Of a stretch of 64,000 nt of DNA, positions 1,152 to 55,017 are shown piece after piece. The position numbers and the translations under genes were made by a program. Numbering within the stretch: the first letter of the stretch is position 1; every line of letters starts with the position of its first letter. The notes under the pieces were generated by a model. It was not told where the DNA came from. It worked only from the letters and a program-made list of their open reading frames with translations, and searched no databases. Origin of the DNA: Geosiphon pyriformis uo1 (lineage: Eukaryota > Fungi > Glomeromycota); the NCBI GenBank assembly GCA_016748015.1, contig JAAOMT010000039.1, forward strand, positions 22,426 to 86,425, in the 5' to 3' direction.

Positions 1152-2833
1152 ATGAAAATTGCTTTACAAAATAGTTTAAAATCTATTTTTAATATTTTTC
1201 TCTTTGTTATTATAGCGATATCATTATTTTTTTTTATAAAGATAATTTTCATCGAATATTTTCTAAATACTAGTTCAAGTGATCTTCAAAGTAAATCGAC
1301 TTTAATAGAACGTCGGGTCAAGAAGCTAAATGGAAAATATACTTCAAAAAAACACAATTTCTCTGAAAATAATTTATTTCCCCAATTCTTTGAAAATGAC
1401 ACTCCCAGTTCTTTAAATAATAGTATTTTCTTAAACTATACAATTTTTAAAACTCTTAACTTTTATGATCGCTTTTCAAAACTCAAAAGAAGAGACTTTT
1501 TGAATAACCGAGACTTCACATCCTCTCCAGAAATTTCAGGCTCTTCTCTAAACTCACTTCAGTTATCGGTAGGGCCAGGTGCAAACAGACGATTAATGGA
1601 TGACAGAGTTATTGGGGATCAAAAAATGATTGAAAATTTTGCCCAATTCGCATTTTATGCGCAAGAAGCATATTGTTTGGATGAGAATAATGGAAAATAT
1701 GGTCCTGGTTTTTGGGGTGAGTATTTCGTGAAAATTTTGAGAAAGTGTTTTTTAGAAATCTGAAATAGTAAAGTACAAAAGAAAGGTTCTTTCATTTTAG
1801 ATATCAATTGCAGCTGACTTTTTCATCATTTAAAAAATATCATTTTTATTGATTTCATTTCTCTCACTTCAATTACCTAACTCCTCACCAGCCTACGCAT
1901 TTCAACCAGATAAACGTTATTCAAATTTATCCATCCAATCGAAACAAAAAAATACAAAAGTAATAGTCTACTTTCGTGGAAACCCCATCGATCCAGAAAA
2001 CTTGGTTTTTCGACAAAATGCTTTTGCTAGTTATCCTGGCGTTTCTGGCTCTTTTGTTGATATTGAATTGTATACAAAATTTCAAAATGGAAGTCCGGAA
2101 TTGATAGAAAGGATTGAAGCGTTAGTACCTGTTAATATTGATAATAAGTGTAGTATTTTTCTAACAGGGCATGGAGAGGGTGGTGGTAGGTTAATAGAAA
2201 ATTTTAATTCTTAATTTTTTCATCAATCCATTGAAGAAAATTACTCCACAACTAAATCAAATTTTAATCTCAGCATTCGCAGTATTCACTGCACTAAAAC
2301 TTCATGATACTCGACTCAAACGCTGTTCAATATTCACGTACACCTATGGAATGCCACGATTTGGTAGCTCAATTTTCGCGTCTCATATAATCGCCACCTT
2401 AACTCAAATTTTCCGTATAACATATAGCAATGATAATATACCCAGGCTCCAAATAGCTTCTAATGATCCACTTGATACTTTTGAACATCCCCCGACTGAG
2501 TATTGGATTAGTGATGGCTCTAATTGTCAGTGTAGAAATACTCCTACTCCAGAGTACCCTTTAAATCCTTATTACGTCTATGAATGTCCCCCAATTAGGT
2601 TTGGTCATTATGAAAACCCGGTTGGTATATATTTTTTTAATGAAAATAAATTTATGGCAAAAAATTTAAAGTTTTATTCTAAAAATTAATTTTTAATTTT
2701 TAATTTTTAATTTTTTCATAAGGATTGTAATTTAGGAGAAGAGTGGCTCGATGATTCAATCGTTGCTCCATCACATAATGGACCTTATTTCGGATACTTA
2801 ATGGGTGTATGTCCAAAACCCATATTTGGATAA
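1152..2833 (+). CDS. Class 3 lipase-like alpha/beta hydrolase with N-terminal TM/signal anchor, about 438 aa, nucleophile Ser replaced by Gly
   Basis: Exons 1152-1716, 1892-2185, 2274-2620 and 2723-2833 are joined by GT-AG introns and give one open frame. Lipase_3 motifs: VIVYFRG, FLTGHGEGGA, YTYGMPRFG, RITYSNDNIPRL, HPPTEYW, HNGPYFG. The start could be the upstream ATG at 1026. Confidence 0.85.
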
Positions 2834-2974
2834 TTATTTTTGAGGAATTCTATATTTTGTAATTCATTTTTGTGAAATAATAAAGAATATTTAATTTATT
2901 TAAATGAATTTTCATTTTTAGACTTGAATTTGGTTTTAGATATTTATTAAAATCTTTCTGACATTCTTATTTAT

Positions 2975-4005
2975 ATGATCATTTGTTTCGGAGAACTTTC
3001 AAAGATAATTTTCAAAATTTTCAAAATCAAAACTAATCAATATGAAAACCTTCTTTTAATTTATAATATCACAATTCGAAAGATTTTAACGATGGAGATA
3101 GAATTTGAATTTTTTTTACGAAAACTGTTAATTTGAGTTTGTTTAATTTCTACTTGATCTAATTTTGCTCTTGTCAACATAAAAGCCGTTAGAATTTAAA
3201 ATTCAAATTTTTTTTTTTCAATTAAGATGTGGTAATAAATTTTTTTCTAATTCAAAATAATGAATTTTGAGATATAATTTATAAAAAAGTTTTTGTATGT
3301 GATCAGTTATTTAATAAAATAAAATAAAATAAAATTATATATTTTAAAACTATATTAAGTTCTTTTTAGTGTGATCTTTTCTTTTAACTCAATTACTAGA
3401 AAGTTATGAGCAAAATATGGTACTATTGCTGCTAAAATTTGTGAAAGAACATGAAAAGTTTAGTTTTTATAATATATTATCGCTTGGCATTATATGAAGA
3501 TTTAACATAAAGAAATAAATCTTATCTTTAATAGAAACAATATTTTAACTCCCTAATTACCAAGTTTGAATTTAAGTTTGAGCAGCTCTAGATGAAAGGA
3601 ATAATTTTGGTTTGGTAATCAAATGAACTTCAAGAAAAGACAGGATTATTAGATATCCGAATTTCAAATTTTTTTATACCAAATTTCAAAAGCACGAAGG
3701 AGTCGTCTGACAATTTAATTAAGTGGAACTTGATTTATCTAATTTTTTTATTGATCATGAGATTGGCACTGGTAAATAAAAGTTTTAAATTTTAAATTCA
3801 AATGAAAAAATGTGCAATTTGCTTTTGTTAAATAAATTTTTTAATGGAAATTTGATTTTAAATTAGTATACACAACTTTATCGGGAAATCATTGTAAATA
3901 TGGTACCCTCTAGAGTTAAAATCGTATATATTTAAGATGTCGACATAAATTTGTCTGCCTATTGTATAACACATTCAAGCAATTTTTGTTTCCAAGATCA
4001 TTATA
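2975..4005 (+). pseudogene. Degraded tandem paralogue of the lipase-3-like gene
   Basis: Broken frames read FYTKFQ (about 3673), FFIDHEIGT followed by a GT donor at the same position as the GHGEGG intron (about 3745-3775), and YCITHSSNF (about 3960; compare FRITYSNDN). Many stops; boundaries approximate. Confidence 0.55.
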
Positions 4006-4533
4006 TAGATATTTATCTTTCACATGAATTATAATTTCTAAAATAAATTCAGTCTAACTAGTCTATTCTAGGTCTAATACTTTTACACATATATTTAAAA
4101 ATTTATTATATGATTCATATTTTATAAATTACTGTTTTCATACTGCTTTTAAGTATATTATATTGTCAATTTTATCAAAGAGATCTCTCAAAATTAAATT
4201 TAATTGTTTATTTTTTTCAATTTTAAAGGTGTAACATAATTTGAAATTTTAAATAAGATGTCAAAATAATTATAATTTTGCTTTTTTCTTTATAAAAGCT
4301 TTTATAATACTCAAAATTAATATGATTTTTTTTAATGCTTAATTAAGAAATATTATATATTTTTAAAAAGTGGTATTTGTAATATTCTTGTAATTTTTAA
4401 TTGTAACACTCTAAAAATAATTTGTAACAATAAGTTTAAACAATATAATTTATTGTAATGTTATCAACCTTTTTTAAAAGATTGGTTTTAATTAAACTTA
4501 ACAATTTAATTCTGTGACTTATTTTATGAAACA

Positions 4534-4988
4534 CAGTAATTGACAAAAATTTCTGGATTTTTTATGTTCATAAGCCTGCATAATTTTACAAATTTTAGCT
4601 TCATTTGAATAAAGTTTAAGGTTTTTAATTGTTTTAACTTGCTTGATTGGTCAGCTAACTCTTCAGATCTCGATCTAATTGAAAATTTGTGGGCTATTTT
4701 GAAACAGAGGTATAAAAAAGATTTAATATTTTGGATAAGTAATCATCATTAAATTGTAATTGATTTCAATCAATAATTAAAAAGATTGGAAGAGTTTAGA
4801 TTTGAATATATTTTTATTTAGAGAATAACATTAAAGATCAATTAAAAGCTATTGAAAAATATGAACAAAAGATAGATTATTCGTTTTTTTATTGTTAGCT
4901 TTATATTAAATTTACGCTTGTTTAAATAAAATTTTATATGTTTTAACTTTGTGCATAAAAAAAATTAGGAAACTTTTGTCCACCACTT
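4534..4988 (+). mobile_element. Degenerate non-autonomous Tc1/mariner element
   Basis: Imperfect TIRs of about 35 bp (CAGTAATTGACAAAAATTTC... / ...GAAACTTTTGTCCACCACTT, then TA). An internal fragment reads DWSANSSDLDLIENLWAILKQR, matching the Tc1 WPxxSPDLNPIENLW motif. Confidence 0.65.
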
Positions 4989-22218: not shown

Positions 22219-23104
22219 TATGATATTAAAAGATAACTTTTTTTATATAAACAAAATTAAAGTGGTTGATTTTAAAAGAGCACCTTAACAATACTTGACA
22301 AGAGTAAGCCAAATAGATAGTTTTCGAAAAAAGTCATAACTTTAGCATATATCTATAAATTTTATTATAATGATAATTATTTACTAAAAAATAAAAGTAA
22401 TTCGGCCTATGATATAAATCAACATTGTGTTGCTGAATATGACTTATATATAGTGTAATAAAAATCGTTAAGTGTTTTTATGGATTAAATATATAAGCTG
22501 ATAATAAATTTATGAACATTTAACAATTTTAAAAAATATGTGATTTCGAATGAATAAATTTTAGAAATTTATATACCATTAAATTAAATATCCAATATTA
22601 AATTTATAAAAATCAAGTAATTGACAATTGAGGGCCAACAATTTATACGTACCTCCTTATCAGATGACCGTCAGATTTTTAAATGAACCCCTAACAGTTT
22701 AAGCAAAGATTCTTAAATGGTCCTGTTTACCTACAAATAGTTCCTTTGGCCATGTAGTTTAAAACTTGGTGCATCTAATCTTGATCAGAAAGATATAATT
22801 GAAAATGATCCTTTTAACGAGGTTAAGTTTTTGATACTACTAAAGGCGATTCAATACAAAACAGGTTTTGAATTTTTGTGCAAAAAAATTTACACAGGAA
22901 AAAATTGCCAACTAAATTTAGAACAGCTCCAATTATAAAATGCCGTTTAAAAGATATCAACTGAACTATAAATCTACTAATTTATCTGGTTTGCAAGCCT
23001 TAAATATTTACAAGATCTGAAATCAAAAATTTAACATTTCCGGATTATTTTTATATTCGCTGCCTATATTTAGGAAGATAGTTACCTTAACCTTCATACT
23101 ATTT

Positions 23105-50081: not shown

Positions 50082-51572
50082 GGATGAACGCTTTTAAAAA
50101 CAAGTTCTTTTTATTTATAACATCGTACATGTATCTTCTATTCTTTGATCTTTCTTGAGTACAATAATTTTGTAATATAAAATAAATAAATTGAAATCTC
50201 CCAACTTTTAAGGCATTTTCGCAATTTCTCCTGTTAGCATGCTTTTAGTGTCAAATCCCATTTGAGAAATTGTGCTCGTTGATTAGATTCATTTTATCCA
50301 ATGATGCCTATTGATTGTAAAGATCAAAGTCTACTCTTACAAGATTAAATTAAAAATTATGCGATCAATATGAATGAATAAGCGTAGAAAATTATTAGTG
50401 TGAGTTGTAACTCTGAAAATCCAAAAAAAATACCCGCGACGCAACGCGCAGCACGACGTCTTGTCCTTTAAGAGTTTATTAGAAATTTTCAAAAAGAGCT
50501 AGCAGCGCGTGACTTGTCCTCCCAACATCAGGGCTTATTTCGAACTACACTCTCCTTTCTCCATGGCCTTTTCCAAAATGACAAGGCCATATTTTGATAA
50601 AACTTCAACACTGATGCCACAAAGTTCATCAGGAGTTTCACTACGAATGGTTATACTCGATTCCTCATTTTAATCCGCTTACCAAGGCTTATTTGAAATC
50701 ATTGCTTAATTCAGTGAATACTTTCAGTTTTTCCATGTTAACCCAGAATCCGTCCAATAATGAACTGTCAAGTGGTGTGAGAAACAAAAATCGATGAAGC
50801 CCCATTCACCTTTGACGCTTATACTCCAGACAAAACAATTAAACCCGAGGATGCGAGTTCAGTAGATCAATTTTTAATGACGGAAATATTGGCACAGTCG
50901 ATCCATAACTAATACGGCAAATTTGGTCAATCTTTCACTTTCTGATGCCTTGAAAAACATCACAATCGGGATCATTTGAAAATTGGAATATAATTGTTTT
51001 TTATATACATCCAGCCTTTTTCTAAAAAACATTAGTATTATTTAAATGTTTTTTCGAGCAGTTGAAAAGATCACTTGTTAACACCAAATTCATTCTAAAG
51101 ATATATTTTAATTTGCAATTCTGTAACTTAGCAGCTTGGAAGAATAAATCATTCAAGGTTTTAGCTAAAATACTGCAGAATAAACAATTATTAAACATAT
51201 ATATATTAATTGATATTGCTATTTTTTTATAATTTGATTCATTAAAATAAAATAAAAAATATAATGCAATTATTGGCAATATTTTACAAATTTATTTTCA
51301 AACTACATAATAGCTTATTTATTTTATATTTTTGATAACAAGTAAAACAATTAAGACTTTCTATTATAATTGCTTTTCTTATTTTTAGTTTTGATAATTT
51401 TTTTTACTTTTTTTTCAAGTAATATCTCTTTCCTTTTTATTAACACCTTATTTTTAAAACACCCAACAATTTATTTAAACCAGGTTTTTAACAATAAAAA
51501 TTGGGATTATCAAAATTCTTAGAAATTTGACTTTTAAAATTTCTTATTAAAGCTCAAATAATAGTTTAACAT

Positions 51573-51660
51573 CGGATGGATTGTAACACATCAATAATAG
51601 GCAATACTAAGTATTACTATGTAACGCCTATTATTTCCTGTATGGTCACCGTAGGATCCC
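51573..51660 (-). ncRNA. Candidate omega-RNA/reRNA scaffold at the element right end
   Basis: 10-bp stem AAUAAUAGGC/GCCUAUUAUU (51593-51635) enclosing small hairpins, directly 3' of the nuclease ORF. The region is retained, decayed, in the second copy. Confidence 0.5.
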
Positions 51661-52560
51661 CCGAGCGCCACTTTCATCTCTATATTTAACAATCACACAA
51701 TTCCGGCTGTTGTACACTTTGGACCCTCCAATTCTTTGATATCTAAGCTTCGTTCTGGATAATAACACGGATCCCCAATTCCTCGGCCTTGATGATCAGA
51801 CGTTGTCAAAAGCGATAATATGCCCAACAAAGCATTTTACGAACCATTTTTCGTGTAATATTTGTTGTCTTGCAATTCACCATGTCCAACACTGTAAAAG
51901 GAAAAATGACAATGGCGTCGAATTCACGGGTAAAGAATCCAATTGATTTCAGGTGAACTTCACTTTGCAAATGTATAACTTTTCACCGCATCTGAAAAAT
52001 TACATTTCCAGTAGCCGGGCCATTTTATTCTTACGTTTTGAGGAGGATACTAATAACTTATCCTTTTGGAAGATGAGATAGTCCAAGTAATTACAAATGC
52101 AAACTATAAATCCAATAGAACGTTCACCAATCTTGCCTACATCTTTCGTGGGAGAGTACCATATAAAAGGTATACGGATGCCGTGATAAATGGAGACTGC
52201 ATGAAAGATCCATCCGCTTGGGTTTCGCGGAGCTGTTTTTGTATCTCGTATACCTAGGTAAACTTCCACACGTTAGTTTTGCGAGAGTAGGCTAGCTTGT
52301 TATCTGACATTATCTTGGAAAACCGGTCACCTATTATTATTCCTCTTTTTTTTCGAAAATGAAGAGGCCACAAAGCGTGCTTGCCATTATCCAGAATGGT
52401 AATAGGCTTGTAACTATGTGTGGTAAGCACCGACGGATTATGGAGATGAGTGATATAAAACCTGCTCCATGTGGATTTGAAAAATTTTGCGTACGAATTG
52501 TCATTGTTTATCGCTGATCTTTTCGAGATCGAAATGATCGAGTGTGCTGATAAAAACGTT
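51646..52560 (-). pseudogene. tnpB: Fanzor/TnpB RNA-guided RuvC endonuclease pseudogene
   Basis: FRSRKD; ETQA...AVSIYHGIRIPF.WYSP (decayed DPGxR, RuvC-I); LQSEVHLK...EFDAIVIFPF...RKMLCWAYYRF*QRL..KAEELG..VIIQNEA*ISK (relocated Glu); IGGSKVYNSRNCV...RDESGARGI (RuvC-III). 5' boundary approximate. Confidence 0.88.
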
Positions 52561-52689
52561 TGTCCCTTTTTGGTTCAGGTTTGAATTTTGCTAATTTATA
52601 TTACGCCTAATCAGTAATCAATGCTTCATCGAAGCAAAATACCGAAATACACAACAGTTCACATGAACTTGCGCTTGCCCCATTTTGGA

Positions 52690-53070
52690 GTTTCTTGTCT
52701 TCGTGTTCATTAGCTCTCCTTCCCTGTAGTAGCAAATAAAAACTATATTGATGGCAAGAATATCTTGTGAAAGATGTATTGGAAGAGGTCGAAGGCAAAG
52801 CGGCAAAGCCTATCGCGATGGGTGATCACAATTTCCGAGACCATTGCGCGGCTTCTTTCTTCCAATAGGATCTTTAAGCCCTAATCGTTTGAAATTGATA
52901 CCTGACCCGAGATCGCTGAGGAGTTCTTAGGTTGGAAATCGAGAGAGGAGGAGTTGTTTTTGTCGCTCGAGATCCTGTTTTTGCTTGTACTAGGCGTAGA
53001 AGTAAAGTTTCTTGGTGGTATCAGCATTTTGAGAAGTTTGTTCAGGAAAGGAGTATTTATTTTCGCGGTC
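52690..53070 (-). pseudogene. tnpA: IS607-type TnpA (serine resolvase/transposase) pseudogene
   Basis: YFYA*..KQKQDLERQKQLLLSRFPT*ELLSDLGSGINFKRLGL / SEIVITHRDRLCRFAFDLFQYIF / QDILAINIVFIC..GRRA. The YARVS catalytic motif is disrupted. Confidence 0.85.
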
Positions 53071-53549
53071 AAGCATTACTAAGCAGGTTATTGGTATTTT
53101 TATTGATGGCATTATTAAGCAAATCTTTCATCAGTTAGAATGTCTTTTAGATTTTCCTAATGTATCATTGATTGGTGCTACCAAACCCAGCCAATCCACA
53201 ATAAGGATGATGACATCTAAGCGGGAGTGTAATGTGACGCAACAGTTGACATAGGTTATAAACAGAGCATAGGATTGGTCCGCGGCACAAGAAGAGAGAC
53301 AAATACTCAACTTATGTGTTTTAGACCTTATCATTTCTATTATAAAATCATCTCAATTCACACCCTCTGATCCTCGACGTTCCAAGGTTCACAACTAGCG
53401 AACACAAGGCGCTTTTGAGAAACTGGTTTCTTTCCTCCTTGGACAAAAGGCCACACTTCGAGCAGATTATTTATCATTCCTTTAATCTCAAACATCTTAA
53501 CTATCCTTCTATAAAGTTACCTAGCTAAAGCGTAAAAATTTTCACAACA

Positions 53550-55017
53550 ATGTCAGTTGACCTCGAACCTCCAAATCAACTCTCGTTTACTCGTATGTAT
53601 GAAGTTCGATTGCTACCGAGACATATGTATATTTTGGTTTAGAGTACTTCAGATCAAGACTTTGTCGATATTTCTTTCACCTGATCCTGTACATCCAATG
53701 GTCAAATTATTTTTTGTGCTAAATTCTCTTTAATTTTAGGGCCTTTTACACAAACTGTTAAAGAGTGTCTCACCGTGAGTAATCCTAATCATGAGCCTGT
53801 CGCTTTTAAGGTTAAGACAACTGCTCCAAAACAGTATTGCGTAAGGCCAAATTCCGGAAGGATTGAAGCTGGTCAAAGTGTTACAGTCCAAGGTAATTTC
53901 TATAGGGCGTCATCTACTTTTATATGTGTCAATTTATTATCTATGAAATTCTGGTATTGCAATAAATGTTATTTAAACTGTTTCCTTACTATTCTTAAAT
54001 TTCATTTACAATAGTTGTTCTTCAGCCCATGAAAGAAGATCCACCTCTCGACTATAAATGTAAAGACAAGTTTTTAGTGCAGAGTGTTGCTATCACGCCT
54101 GATCGGGAGACTTTAACTTTGCCTGAATTGGTTAGAAATAATATATACCTTAATAAGGTCATTGCCACATATTTCCTTTGATTAATCATAAAATTTTTAC
54201 AGTGGGCCATAACGGAAAGACAATCAAAAGAGCTGATCAAAGAAAATAAAATTCGATGCATTTACCTTCCACCCCTTGCACCGAGTTTCCTTAATCATAC
54301 TGCCGTTCAACCTTCTTCTTTACCATCTGGCTTCAATCCACCACCCTCACCGACCGAGCAATTTAGTGTTCCTGCCACCAGTATAGCTTCTGATTCAATG
54401 GTATATATCATTCAAAATGTTTATAGCCTGCTTTAGAAAAACATACCCTTTAAAAGTGGTTTGTTTCTGCAATTTCTTTTTCACAGGCCAATTCCCCTGT
54501 TGATCGGCTGACGCACTCAAATTATTCCACAGTCAAGGAAAGTTCTGCTTCACCATTTGAAAAAAATCCGATTTCAAACGTTGAGCGCTCTTCAGCTCCA
54601 ATGAACGTCACCAATGGGAATGATCATAATCAAATCCCCCCAACACCAACTTTTGTAGGCACATTCCCGAAAGATGAGAAAGAACACCATTTCAGATCCA
54701 AAAATACCTACATCAGTGATGCTTCATCTGGCGTTGATGATGAAGCTACTCGTTTACGACGTCAATTAAATGAGGCACAAGAAGAAATAAAACGCCTCAA
54801 TCATGTAGTTGAAAATTACAAGCAAGAATTGGATACTGCCCGTATGAGGCAGCGTAAGAGTGAGGAGGTCGCTGAAAAAGCTGGTAGAAATAGTTCTTCG
54901 GCTAATGCTGGTTTTGCTGTCCGAACACAAGAAAAAATTCCCGAAGGATATTATCCATTTGAATTTATTGTGGGTGCAGCTGTGGCCGCCTTTTTGTTTG
55001 GAGTTATGTTTTTCTAA
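53550..55017 (+). CDS. SCS2: VAP/Scs2 family ER membrane adaptor (MSP domain, coiled coil, C-terminal TM), 346 aa
   Basis: Exons 53550-53592, 53740-53892, 54015-54130, 54203-54400 and 54487-55017. Signature [18 protein letters not shown] and CKDKFLVQ; tail anchor [17 protein letters not shown]. Confidence 0.93.

Follow-up and report, generated by a model that had tools for sequence, protein, structure and literature searches.

The 64,000-nt window analyzed here (contig JAAOMT010000039.1 of the glomeromycote fungus Geosiphon pyriformis uo1, positions 22,426 to 86,425 of the forward strand) carries at positions 51573-53133, on the minus strand, what we read, with a probability of about 0.9, as an IS607-type DNA transposon of the Fanzor2/pro-Fanzor clade that has decayed into a pseudogene. 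The kind of element is already known, as it is a dead IS607/Fanzor2 transposon, and what is new is the host lineage, the copy number and a TnpA recombinase without a helix-turn-helix (HTH) domain. An earlier note, made from the letters alone, had recognized here an IS607 TnpA serine recombinase beside a Fanzor nuclease with a rearranged active site. Profiles and motifs of sibling copies from the same genome agree with this, the nuclease being of the Fanzor2 type with DPG motif and alternative glutamate. All positions below are window coordinates unless a contig is named. Searches used natural stop-free pieces only, and a majority-rule sequence of 30 copies served for reading frames, divergence and tree placement only.

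Remnants and boundaries of the element

The remnant of the TnpA serine-recombinase catalytic domain, located by motifs and sibling-profile matches, is split over frames at 52746..52992 on the minus strand. The motifs quoted in the earlier note are all found in the minus-strand translation, YKQKQDLERQ at 52989-52960, LSDLGSGINFKRLGL inside 52926-52813 and THRDRLCRFAFDL inside 52880-52746. The nucleophile motif YARVSS, intact in the natural sibling L016 (HLYARVSS) and in the metagenomic relatives L041-L046, has decayed to YA*Y in the window, with an 8-nt deletion. Since single pieces are short and decayed, profiles of pieces were needed for family assignment. Pfam gave just a weak Resolvase match with single window pieces (E 0.097), and longer open reading frames from siblings reached E 1.8e-4. 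The top NCBIfam family of the sibling TnpA pieces tested was transpos_IS607 (NF033518; E 1.5e-13 and 9e-10), and profile A2, made from 22 natural TnpA pieces, matched 6dgc, 3lhk, 3ilx and 6dgb in the PDB (E 2.9e-12 to 4e-6). These are solved IS607-family catalytic domains, ISC1926 first (2.9e-12), then MJ0014, ISC1904 and IS1535.

The TnpB/Fanzor core remnant (WED, REC, RuvC and zinc finger), interrupted by stops and frameshifts, extends over 51649..52574 on the minus strand according to sibling profile A3. It is clear from the minus-strand translation that the Fanzor motifs reported earlier are all present, with AIVIFPF inside 51982-51809, IIQNEA and then a stop at 51805-51743, and YRDESGARGI inside 51795-51649. 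The codon of the catalytic RuvC-I aspartate (52186..52188, minus strand) has become a tyrosine codon: the piece 52003-52272 reads AVSIYHGIR where the natural sibling L026 reads SLDPGIRT, so that the DPG present in L026 and invariant in relatives is YHG in the window. At the canonical RuvC-II glutamate position the window has IFPF and the siblings have IPPFE. The alternative glutamate, six residues before the first CxxC (codon 51749..51751, minus strand), is retained as IIQNEA, compared with QNEAYTSKNCSQCG in the siblings, which read QNEAYTSKxCSQCG. It is followed by a stop and by the loss at about 51739 of about 29 nt holding the first CxxC, and the second CxxC has a C to S change. The RuvC-III aspartate codon (51676..51678, minus strand; YRDESGARGI) is kept, as seen from the window piece and the sibling comparison. 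Complete versions of the C4 zinc finger and the RuvC-III RD are found in siblings L007 and L024, and the natural siblings carry YARVSS, DPG, QNEAYTSKxCSQCG...CRNC and DRDENGA. Compared with the family majority the window copy has in addition lost blocks of about 325 nt near 52729, about 63 nt near 52775 and 24 nt near 51651. The earlier verdict that this copy is dead, on account of stops, the D to Y change in RuvC-I and the deletion of the first CxxC, is borne out on every count.

Profile A3, made from 42 natural RuvC-region pieces, matched the mimivirus Fanzor2 chain 9b0l_P ("TnpB-like protein L79") in the PDB with E 1.4e-22, followed by Cas12f-type chains at E of about 1e-10; a PDB search with one sibling Fanzor-part piece gave no match. 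The combination of DPG and alternative glutamate is the fingerprint that defines Fanzors and pro-Fanzors in Yoon et al. 2023 (PMC10711439), and the regular expression of that paper matches the family majority as well as the metagenomic relative P0001.

The whole decayed copy measures 1,561 bp, with full-length siblings of about 1.9 kb (for example L017:529-2439). It is delimited by the points where similarity to about 29 sibling loci begins and ends, and its Kimura two-parameter distance to the family majority is 0.16. The right boundary at 51573 is exact, as 22 distinct copies end in ...ATCCATCCG and diverge beyond it. The span given in the earlier note, 51573-53070, therefore had the correct 3' boundary, and sibling similarity moves the 5' boundary to 53133. 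The right-end terminus GATGTGTTACAATCCATCCG (51573..51592, minus strand) is the same in 22 genomic copies, in distant subfamilies and in the metagenomic contigs L041 and L043. The left end (53071..53133, minus strand) has the terminal sequence (C/T)GATGAAAAG and is 90-94% conserved across copies with differing flanks, seven copies sharing the terminus (C/T)GATGAAAAGATTTGCTTAATAATGCC. It holds two direct subterminal repeats TGCTTAnTAATGC (53122-53108 and 53086-53071) and a TATA-like AATAAAAATA upstream of 53070. The motif TGCTTAnTAATGCC has two occurrences at the left end and a third one next to the right end, all in direct orientation, which is the pattern that would be expected of serine-transposase binding sites. 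In the 22 right-end and 7 left-end junctions, whose flanks are unrelated, terminal symmetry is limited to a weak CxGATG..GATTG, and comparison of the flanks of the four copies having both ends revealed no target-site duplication. C(C/T)G is present at both junctions, and no empty site was found that would place the crossover, which in ISXfa1 takes place at a matching GG dinucleotide.

The family in the fungal genome and its intact relatives

A DNA search of the fungal assembly itself (128 Mb, 792 contigs) gave 106 matches in about 40 loci with 68-80% identity, and protein searches gave 107 and 69 matches at further, more distant loci with 28-60% identity. The genome searches scored the best 40 of 171, 150 of 221 and 68 of 393 candidates, and the resulting counts, at least 40 subfamily loci and more than 80 Fanzor-like loci, are like all genomic copy counts lower bounds. 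Copies were found on more than 40 contigs, with a decay of 10-26%. Measured against the majority-rule sequence, divergence is 11.7% for the median copy and 14.4% for the window copy, with C>T and G>A changes dominating, and the GC content drops from 45% in the family majority to 39% in the window copy. Identical termini in unrelated flanks, repeated over dozens to hundreds of copies, are strong evidence of transposition and proliferation in the fungal nucleus; by these matches the family in this genome comprises dozens to hundreds of copies, and the element is not an isolated relic. Two family copies lie head to head, inverted, at L025 (G000:C784:797885-799224). At the window copy itself, one DNA contig of sequencing run X1 skips 144 nt within 52538-52683 (CG..CA), and may represent a shorter variant or a collapsed paralogue.

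In the fungal family the distance from the left end to YA(RVSS) is about 140 nt, compared with 321 nt in L041, and of 66 TnpA matches in the genome 65 lack the first 48 residues, from which we conclude that the MerR-type HTH is absent from the fungal family TnpA. Since the family thus lacks this DNA-binding domain, it was probably mobilized in trans by an autonomous relative, and the amplified family is probably a deletion derivative. The sole TnpA-like match reaching the HTH region (G000:C667:97832-98344; residues 7-183, 28% identity) is weak and may be a remnant of an autonomous subfamily.

Intact relatives were found outside the genome. A profile search of 1.84 billion representatives returned 5,615 homologues (best 314 bits), and the closest of these are metagenomic. 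Their identity to the family majority is 70% over 282 aa for P0001 and 46-51% for P0005, P0004 and P0151. The metagenomic contigs L041 and L043, from one assembly, carry intact elements of 2.29 kb that are 84% identical and end in the same right terminus ...AAAATCCATCCG, with a third, inverted right end also on L041. Their TnpA proteins (246-248 aa) pass the NCBIfam model transpos_IS607 (132.7 against a cutoff of 110) as well as Pfam Resolvase and MerR, the latter in L041 with 28.6 against a cutoff of 28.2, and P0151 passes guided_TnpB. The left ends of both contigs have a TATA box and the palindrome TGACGTCA upstream of the tnpA ATG. Counted in that assembly, the intact relative is present in at least three copies with 84-97.5% identity (L041:1973-4264, L041:6668-6829 and L043:763-3070). 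From these sequences the clade of the 2.29-kb element looks recently active in some metagenomic organism.

P0151 was modelled with AlphaFold (AF2; mean pLDDT 65.5), which gave a confident core, disordered long linkers and values of about 90 at residues 81-90. The best structural match of the model is 9b0l_P (Foldseek E 1.9e-20; VIA Z 22.2 over model residues 74-636). The alignment with 9b0l residues 53-518 begins at model residue 74, and TnpB structures align only from about residue 178. ISDra2 TnpB (8h1j) is the second match with a Z of 18.6, and Fanzor1 follows far behind (Foldseek rank 22, E 3e-8).

The family majority was placed by a quick maximum-likelihood tree of 90 sequences, where its partner is P0001 (SH-aLRT 94), joined next by P0004 and P0005 (99) and then by P0011 (99). 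That clade is sister to a mixed clade of cyanobacterial and viral sequences (SH-aLRT 80-84), so the phylogenetic comparison suggested in the earlier note does place the family beside these groups, and the fungal family is not nested among cyanobacteria. As a separate clade in sister position it allows no donor to be named. The horizontal acquisition proposed earlier is plausible for the clade, and the tree gives no direct cyanobacterial source. The chromosome of the phagocytic planctomycete Candidatus Uabimicrobium holds at least nine nuclease relatives (L156-L163, L171 and L176), some overlapping tnpA and some being separate genes. The top "prokaryotic" matches, L147 and L148, are short contigs in Synergistaceae metagenome-assembled genomes from goat rumen, and could be eukaryotic or viral DNA binned in error.

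Overlap of tnpA with the Fanzor reading frame

The earlier note described tnpA and the nuclease gene as adjacent. Instead, the Fanzor frame runs through tnpA in the +1 frame, where it encodes an N-terminal domain. The coding remnant of this Fanzor2 domain in the window (52826..53027, minus strand) starts with the ATG at 53027 and continues to ...RSYWKKEAAQWSRKL and a stop, where RSYWKKEAAQWSRKL (52873-52826) is a decayed FW..LWLP motif. In the sibling L017:624-1202, one natural frame of 193 aa leads from the FW..LWLP motif into the TnpB core.

The same arrangement is found intact in the relatives. The N-terminal extension of the 601-648-aa proteins P0151, P0005, P0016, P0029 and P0036 is marked by [FY]W-x(about 10)-LW(L/S)P and SWF, and in the corresponding DNA an intact tnpA sits within the extension with the Fanzor frame in +1. 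The overlap measures 614-755 nt in five of six loci (examples are L041:2078-2815 against 2202-4148 and L045:2994-3755 against 3001-4914). The nesting recurs in L143, L166 and many others. It was seen in all 33 viral contigs having both genes and in 32 of 37 prokaryotic loci, mostly cyanobacterial. Among 42 TnpA representatives with less than 60% mutual identity, the +1 frame contains 1.36 stops compared with 4.58 in synonymous-codon shuffles, and it is stop-free in 17 of the 42 with 1.2 expected; the +2 frame is not depleted of stops (12.0 compared with 13.1). W78 and W117 of the extension are invariant in 33 sequences from bacteria, viruses and metagenomes, which requires fixed wobble bases in tnpA.

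In the solved mimiviral ApmFz2 the RuvC fold is completed by the N-terminal domain (residues 53-130), which also supplies a thumb that clasps the DNA (PMC11832414). Because the P0151 model aligns from residue 74 on with residues 53 on of solved ApmFz2, the extension is not an annotation artefact. PMC11832414 mentions neither tnpA nor any overlap, and the overlap is likewise absent from the other Fanzor papers that could be searched. We tentatively suggest, at somewhat less than even odds, that tnpA is nested in +1 in the nuclease gene throughout the pro-Fanzor/Fanzor2 IS607 clade (cyanobacteria, giant viruses, metagenomic eukaryote-like elements and the fungal family), and that the N-terminal domain (RuvC-R, thumb and nuclear localization signal) would have arisen on DNA of the recombinase catalytic domain, overprinted before the jump to eukaryotes. 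If unreported, the clade-wide overlap of tnpA with the N-terminal domain of Fanzor is new.

Transcription, chromosomal setting and rival explanations

Contigs from sequencing runs X2 and X3 match 51577-53070 without difference, and nothing in them comes from the AT-rich flanks. As these runs carry spliced contigs of the neighbouring VAP gene they are RNA-derived, and the dead copy is transcribed on its sense strand. One X2 contig ends at 53070 (minus strand) and continues with letters like the template-switch oligo, which on this contig evidence makes 53070 a candidate 5' end of the element RNA. In some transcripts from X2 and X3 a joint 52251->52329 (cut +2) marks a 77-nt intron at 52254..52330 on the minus strand, with GT..ACTAAC..AG and ACTAAC as branch site, and since it removes conserved coding sequence we regard it as adventitious or cryptic. 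Within 53323-54300 the VAP (MSP-domain) gene, on the plus strand, has introns at 53593-53739, 53891-54012 and 54130-54201. Its mRNA start at 53323, likewise seen with the template-switch oligo in X2, is divergent from the element start at 53070 and about 250 bp away from it. Transcription of the copy could be driven by its own left-end TATA-like motif or by the divergent VAP promoter.

The transcript raises the question whether the locus has been domesticated, as a Fanzor-derived host gene or a regulatory RNA locus, or with its transcript or left-end promoter serving the VAP gene. The transcription of the copy and its divergent 5' end about 250 bp from the VAP start are in favour of such a role. 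Both frames are, however, ruined by stops and frameshifts and by deletions 29-325 nt long, and the spliced intron removes conserved coding sequence. With 14% the copy is among the more divergent ones of the family and gives no sign of constraint. We therefore consider domestication very improbable.

Close to the right terminus, about 20 nt before it, the element can fold into a stem-loop of 11 bp with inner helices (51593..51635, minus strand). In 26 copies and relatives, 82% of the cells pair compared with 77% after shuffling (0/500), and double-sided changes number 15 compared with 5.9 expected (0/500), with slid controls at 31-56%; the covariation support is modest. The stem-loop could be the scaffold hairpin of an omegaRNA, a TnpA site or both, as judged from fold and covariation. 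Rfam gave no match in 51400-53300.

On one side the element is flanked by a UBC-fold gene (Pfam UQ_con, E 1.5e-5) and on the other by the MSP-domain gene (E 4e-13), whose GT..AG introns are spliced out in the RNA-derived contigs. This agrees with the earlier placement between AKTIP-like and VAP genes in a fungal chromosome. The left junction into the VAP gene is bridged by one DNA contig, and another crosses the right junction by 29 nt.

These neighbours also bear on the origin of the DNA. A fragment of an integrated giant virus (Nucleocytoviricota), carrying IS607/Fanzor2 by chance, could account for the gene content, as Fanzor2 is enriched in giant viruses (PMC10530073) and IMG/VR contains 247 viral-contig relatives with 30-48% identity and the same tnpA/Fanzor architecture. 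The neighbours are, however, spliced fungal genes, the repeat unit is just 1.5-1.9 kb and is bounded by one and the same pair of termini at more than 20 loci in unrelated flanks, and the tree groups the family with metagenomic sequences outside the viral clade. We give this explanation hardly any weight compared with a cellular transposon family. Cyanobacterial or endobacterial DNA, mis-assembled into the fungal contig or transferred very recently from a symbiont, is just as hard to sustain: the fungus is known to keep cyanobacteria and the nearest prokaryotic relatives are mostly cyanobacterial, but DNA contigs cross both junctions, copies decayed by 10-26% are scattered over more than 40 contigs, prokaryotic sequences reach at best about 45-52% identity in the RuvC part compared with 47-70% for the metagenomic relatives, and in the quick tree the family is not nested among cyanobacteria.

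Collectively, we favour a pseudogenised IS607-type transposon with the following history. According to the literature on the family, TnpA of a live element would excise a double-stranded circle, which would be re-inserted by crossover at a short matching motif without target duplication. Fanzor2 would take up an omegaRNA made from the right end, cut DNA beside a target-adjacent motif (TAM) and so favour retention and spread of the element. With tnpA placed inside the 5' part of the Fanzor frame, one nucleotide off, the same DNA encodes the catalytic domain of the recombinase and the N-terminal domain of Fanzor2. An old burst took the family to dozens of loci or more. The window copy has lost about 360 nt together with the nucleophile motif, the RuvC-I aspartate and the first zinc-finger pair. 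It cannot act, but sense-strand transcripts of it still begin close to its left end, beside the VAP promoter that points the other way.

Several points weigh against this reading or parts of it. A genome-wide DNA search, as the earlier note had proposed for collecting copies and finding an intact one, did yield the sibling loci (at least 40), and no intact gene or copy was found in this genome among the scored candidates; scoring was restricted to the best candidates, which leaves room for an intact copy. No empty site and no small RNA was seen in this genome, nor was a guide RNA observed directly, and the reading frames of the 5' half were set by the majority-rule sequence from 30 copies. That the element transposed here, with a crossover motif, a TAM and an omegaRNA, is inferred. 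Mobilization of a deletion derivative in trans has a single weak HTH-bearing trace. The RNA evidence comes from contigs rather than raw reads and gives neither levels nor true ends, and divergent transcription from the VAP promoter would explain the RNA without any element promoter. The earlier note went further and held that the genome had hosted a complete OMEGA system. As the family TnpA lacks the MerR HTH and every scored copy is broken, a complete system in this genome is not demonstrated.

Relation to known systems and significance

Among the insertion-sequence families of prokaryotes, only IS607 is known to have crossed into eukaryotes. Gilbert and Cordaux (2013) reported 1-22 copies per genome, and hence at most 22 IS607 copies in a eukaryotic genome, from Amoebozoa, Ascomycetes, Basidiomycetes and Stramenopiles, with transposition there unproven. 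The host fungus lies outside these groups, and here the copies number dozens to hundreds. The literature searched holds no link between Fanzor and Glomeromycotina, and the supplements of PMC10711439 name no such genera. The suggestion of the earlier note that a Glomeromycotina lineage may be undescribed is in line with this.

The Fanzor2 IS607 elements of giant viruses and amoebae (ISvMimi, ISvAR158 and Acanthamoeba ACa-1/2; ApmFz2, PDB 9B0L) resemble the fungal family in combining TnpA with a nuclease that has DPG, a glutamate six residues before the zinc finger and RD, in having no target-site duplication and in possessing the N-terminal domain, and the chlorovirus-sized contig L143 has the same tnpA/Fanzor overlap. 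They differ in that the identity of the viral relatives to the fungal family is only about 30-48%, that the fungal TnpA has no HTH, and that close intact relatives of the fungal family have a much longer N-terminal extension, rich in Ser, Thr and Pro (about 185 aa before the TnpB core). The IS607 TnpBs of the cyanobacterial pro-Fanzor type (PMC10711439) likewise have DPG, the alternative glutamate and an IS607 TnpA partner, and the invariant Trp motifs are found in their upstream open frame, which overlaps tnpA. Their hosts are prokaryotic, whereas the fungal family is grouped with metagenomic sequences in a clade of its own, and in comparison with them the left ends of the intact relatives carry TATA-box and TGACGTCA motifs.

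Canonical bacterial elements (IS607 and ISXfa1, with TnpB of the ISDra2 type) have the TnpB fold (8h1j, Z 18.6) in common with the family, which would also share their serine-recombinase transposition and right-end omegaRNA. In canonical TnpB, however, the RuvC-II glutamate is located about 50 residues before the zinc finger, where the fungal sequences have a proline (IPPFE; IFPF in the window), and there is no N-terminal domain. Fanzor1 (Spizellomyces punctatus SpuFz1, PDB 8GKH) is also a eukaryotic relative of TnpB with DPG and the alternative glutamate. It differs by riding on Mariner, Helitron, hAT and similar elements without TnpA, and its structural match is far weaker.

The copy in the window has no functional consequence beyond being a transcribed pseudogene. 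It is the copy number of the family, together with the shared termini, that provides evidence of real IS607 proliferation in a eukaryote. If the overlap of the two genes holds, it would explain the source of the Fanzor2 N-terminal domain and the lasting coupling of recombinase and nuclease, since the overlap would lock the two genes together, and in eukaryotes one capped mRNA could yield both proteins by leaky scanning. The family also points to a clade with intact metagenomic members, which could be tested as compact, eukaryote-adapted RNA-guided nucleases.

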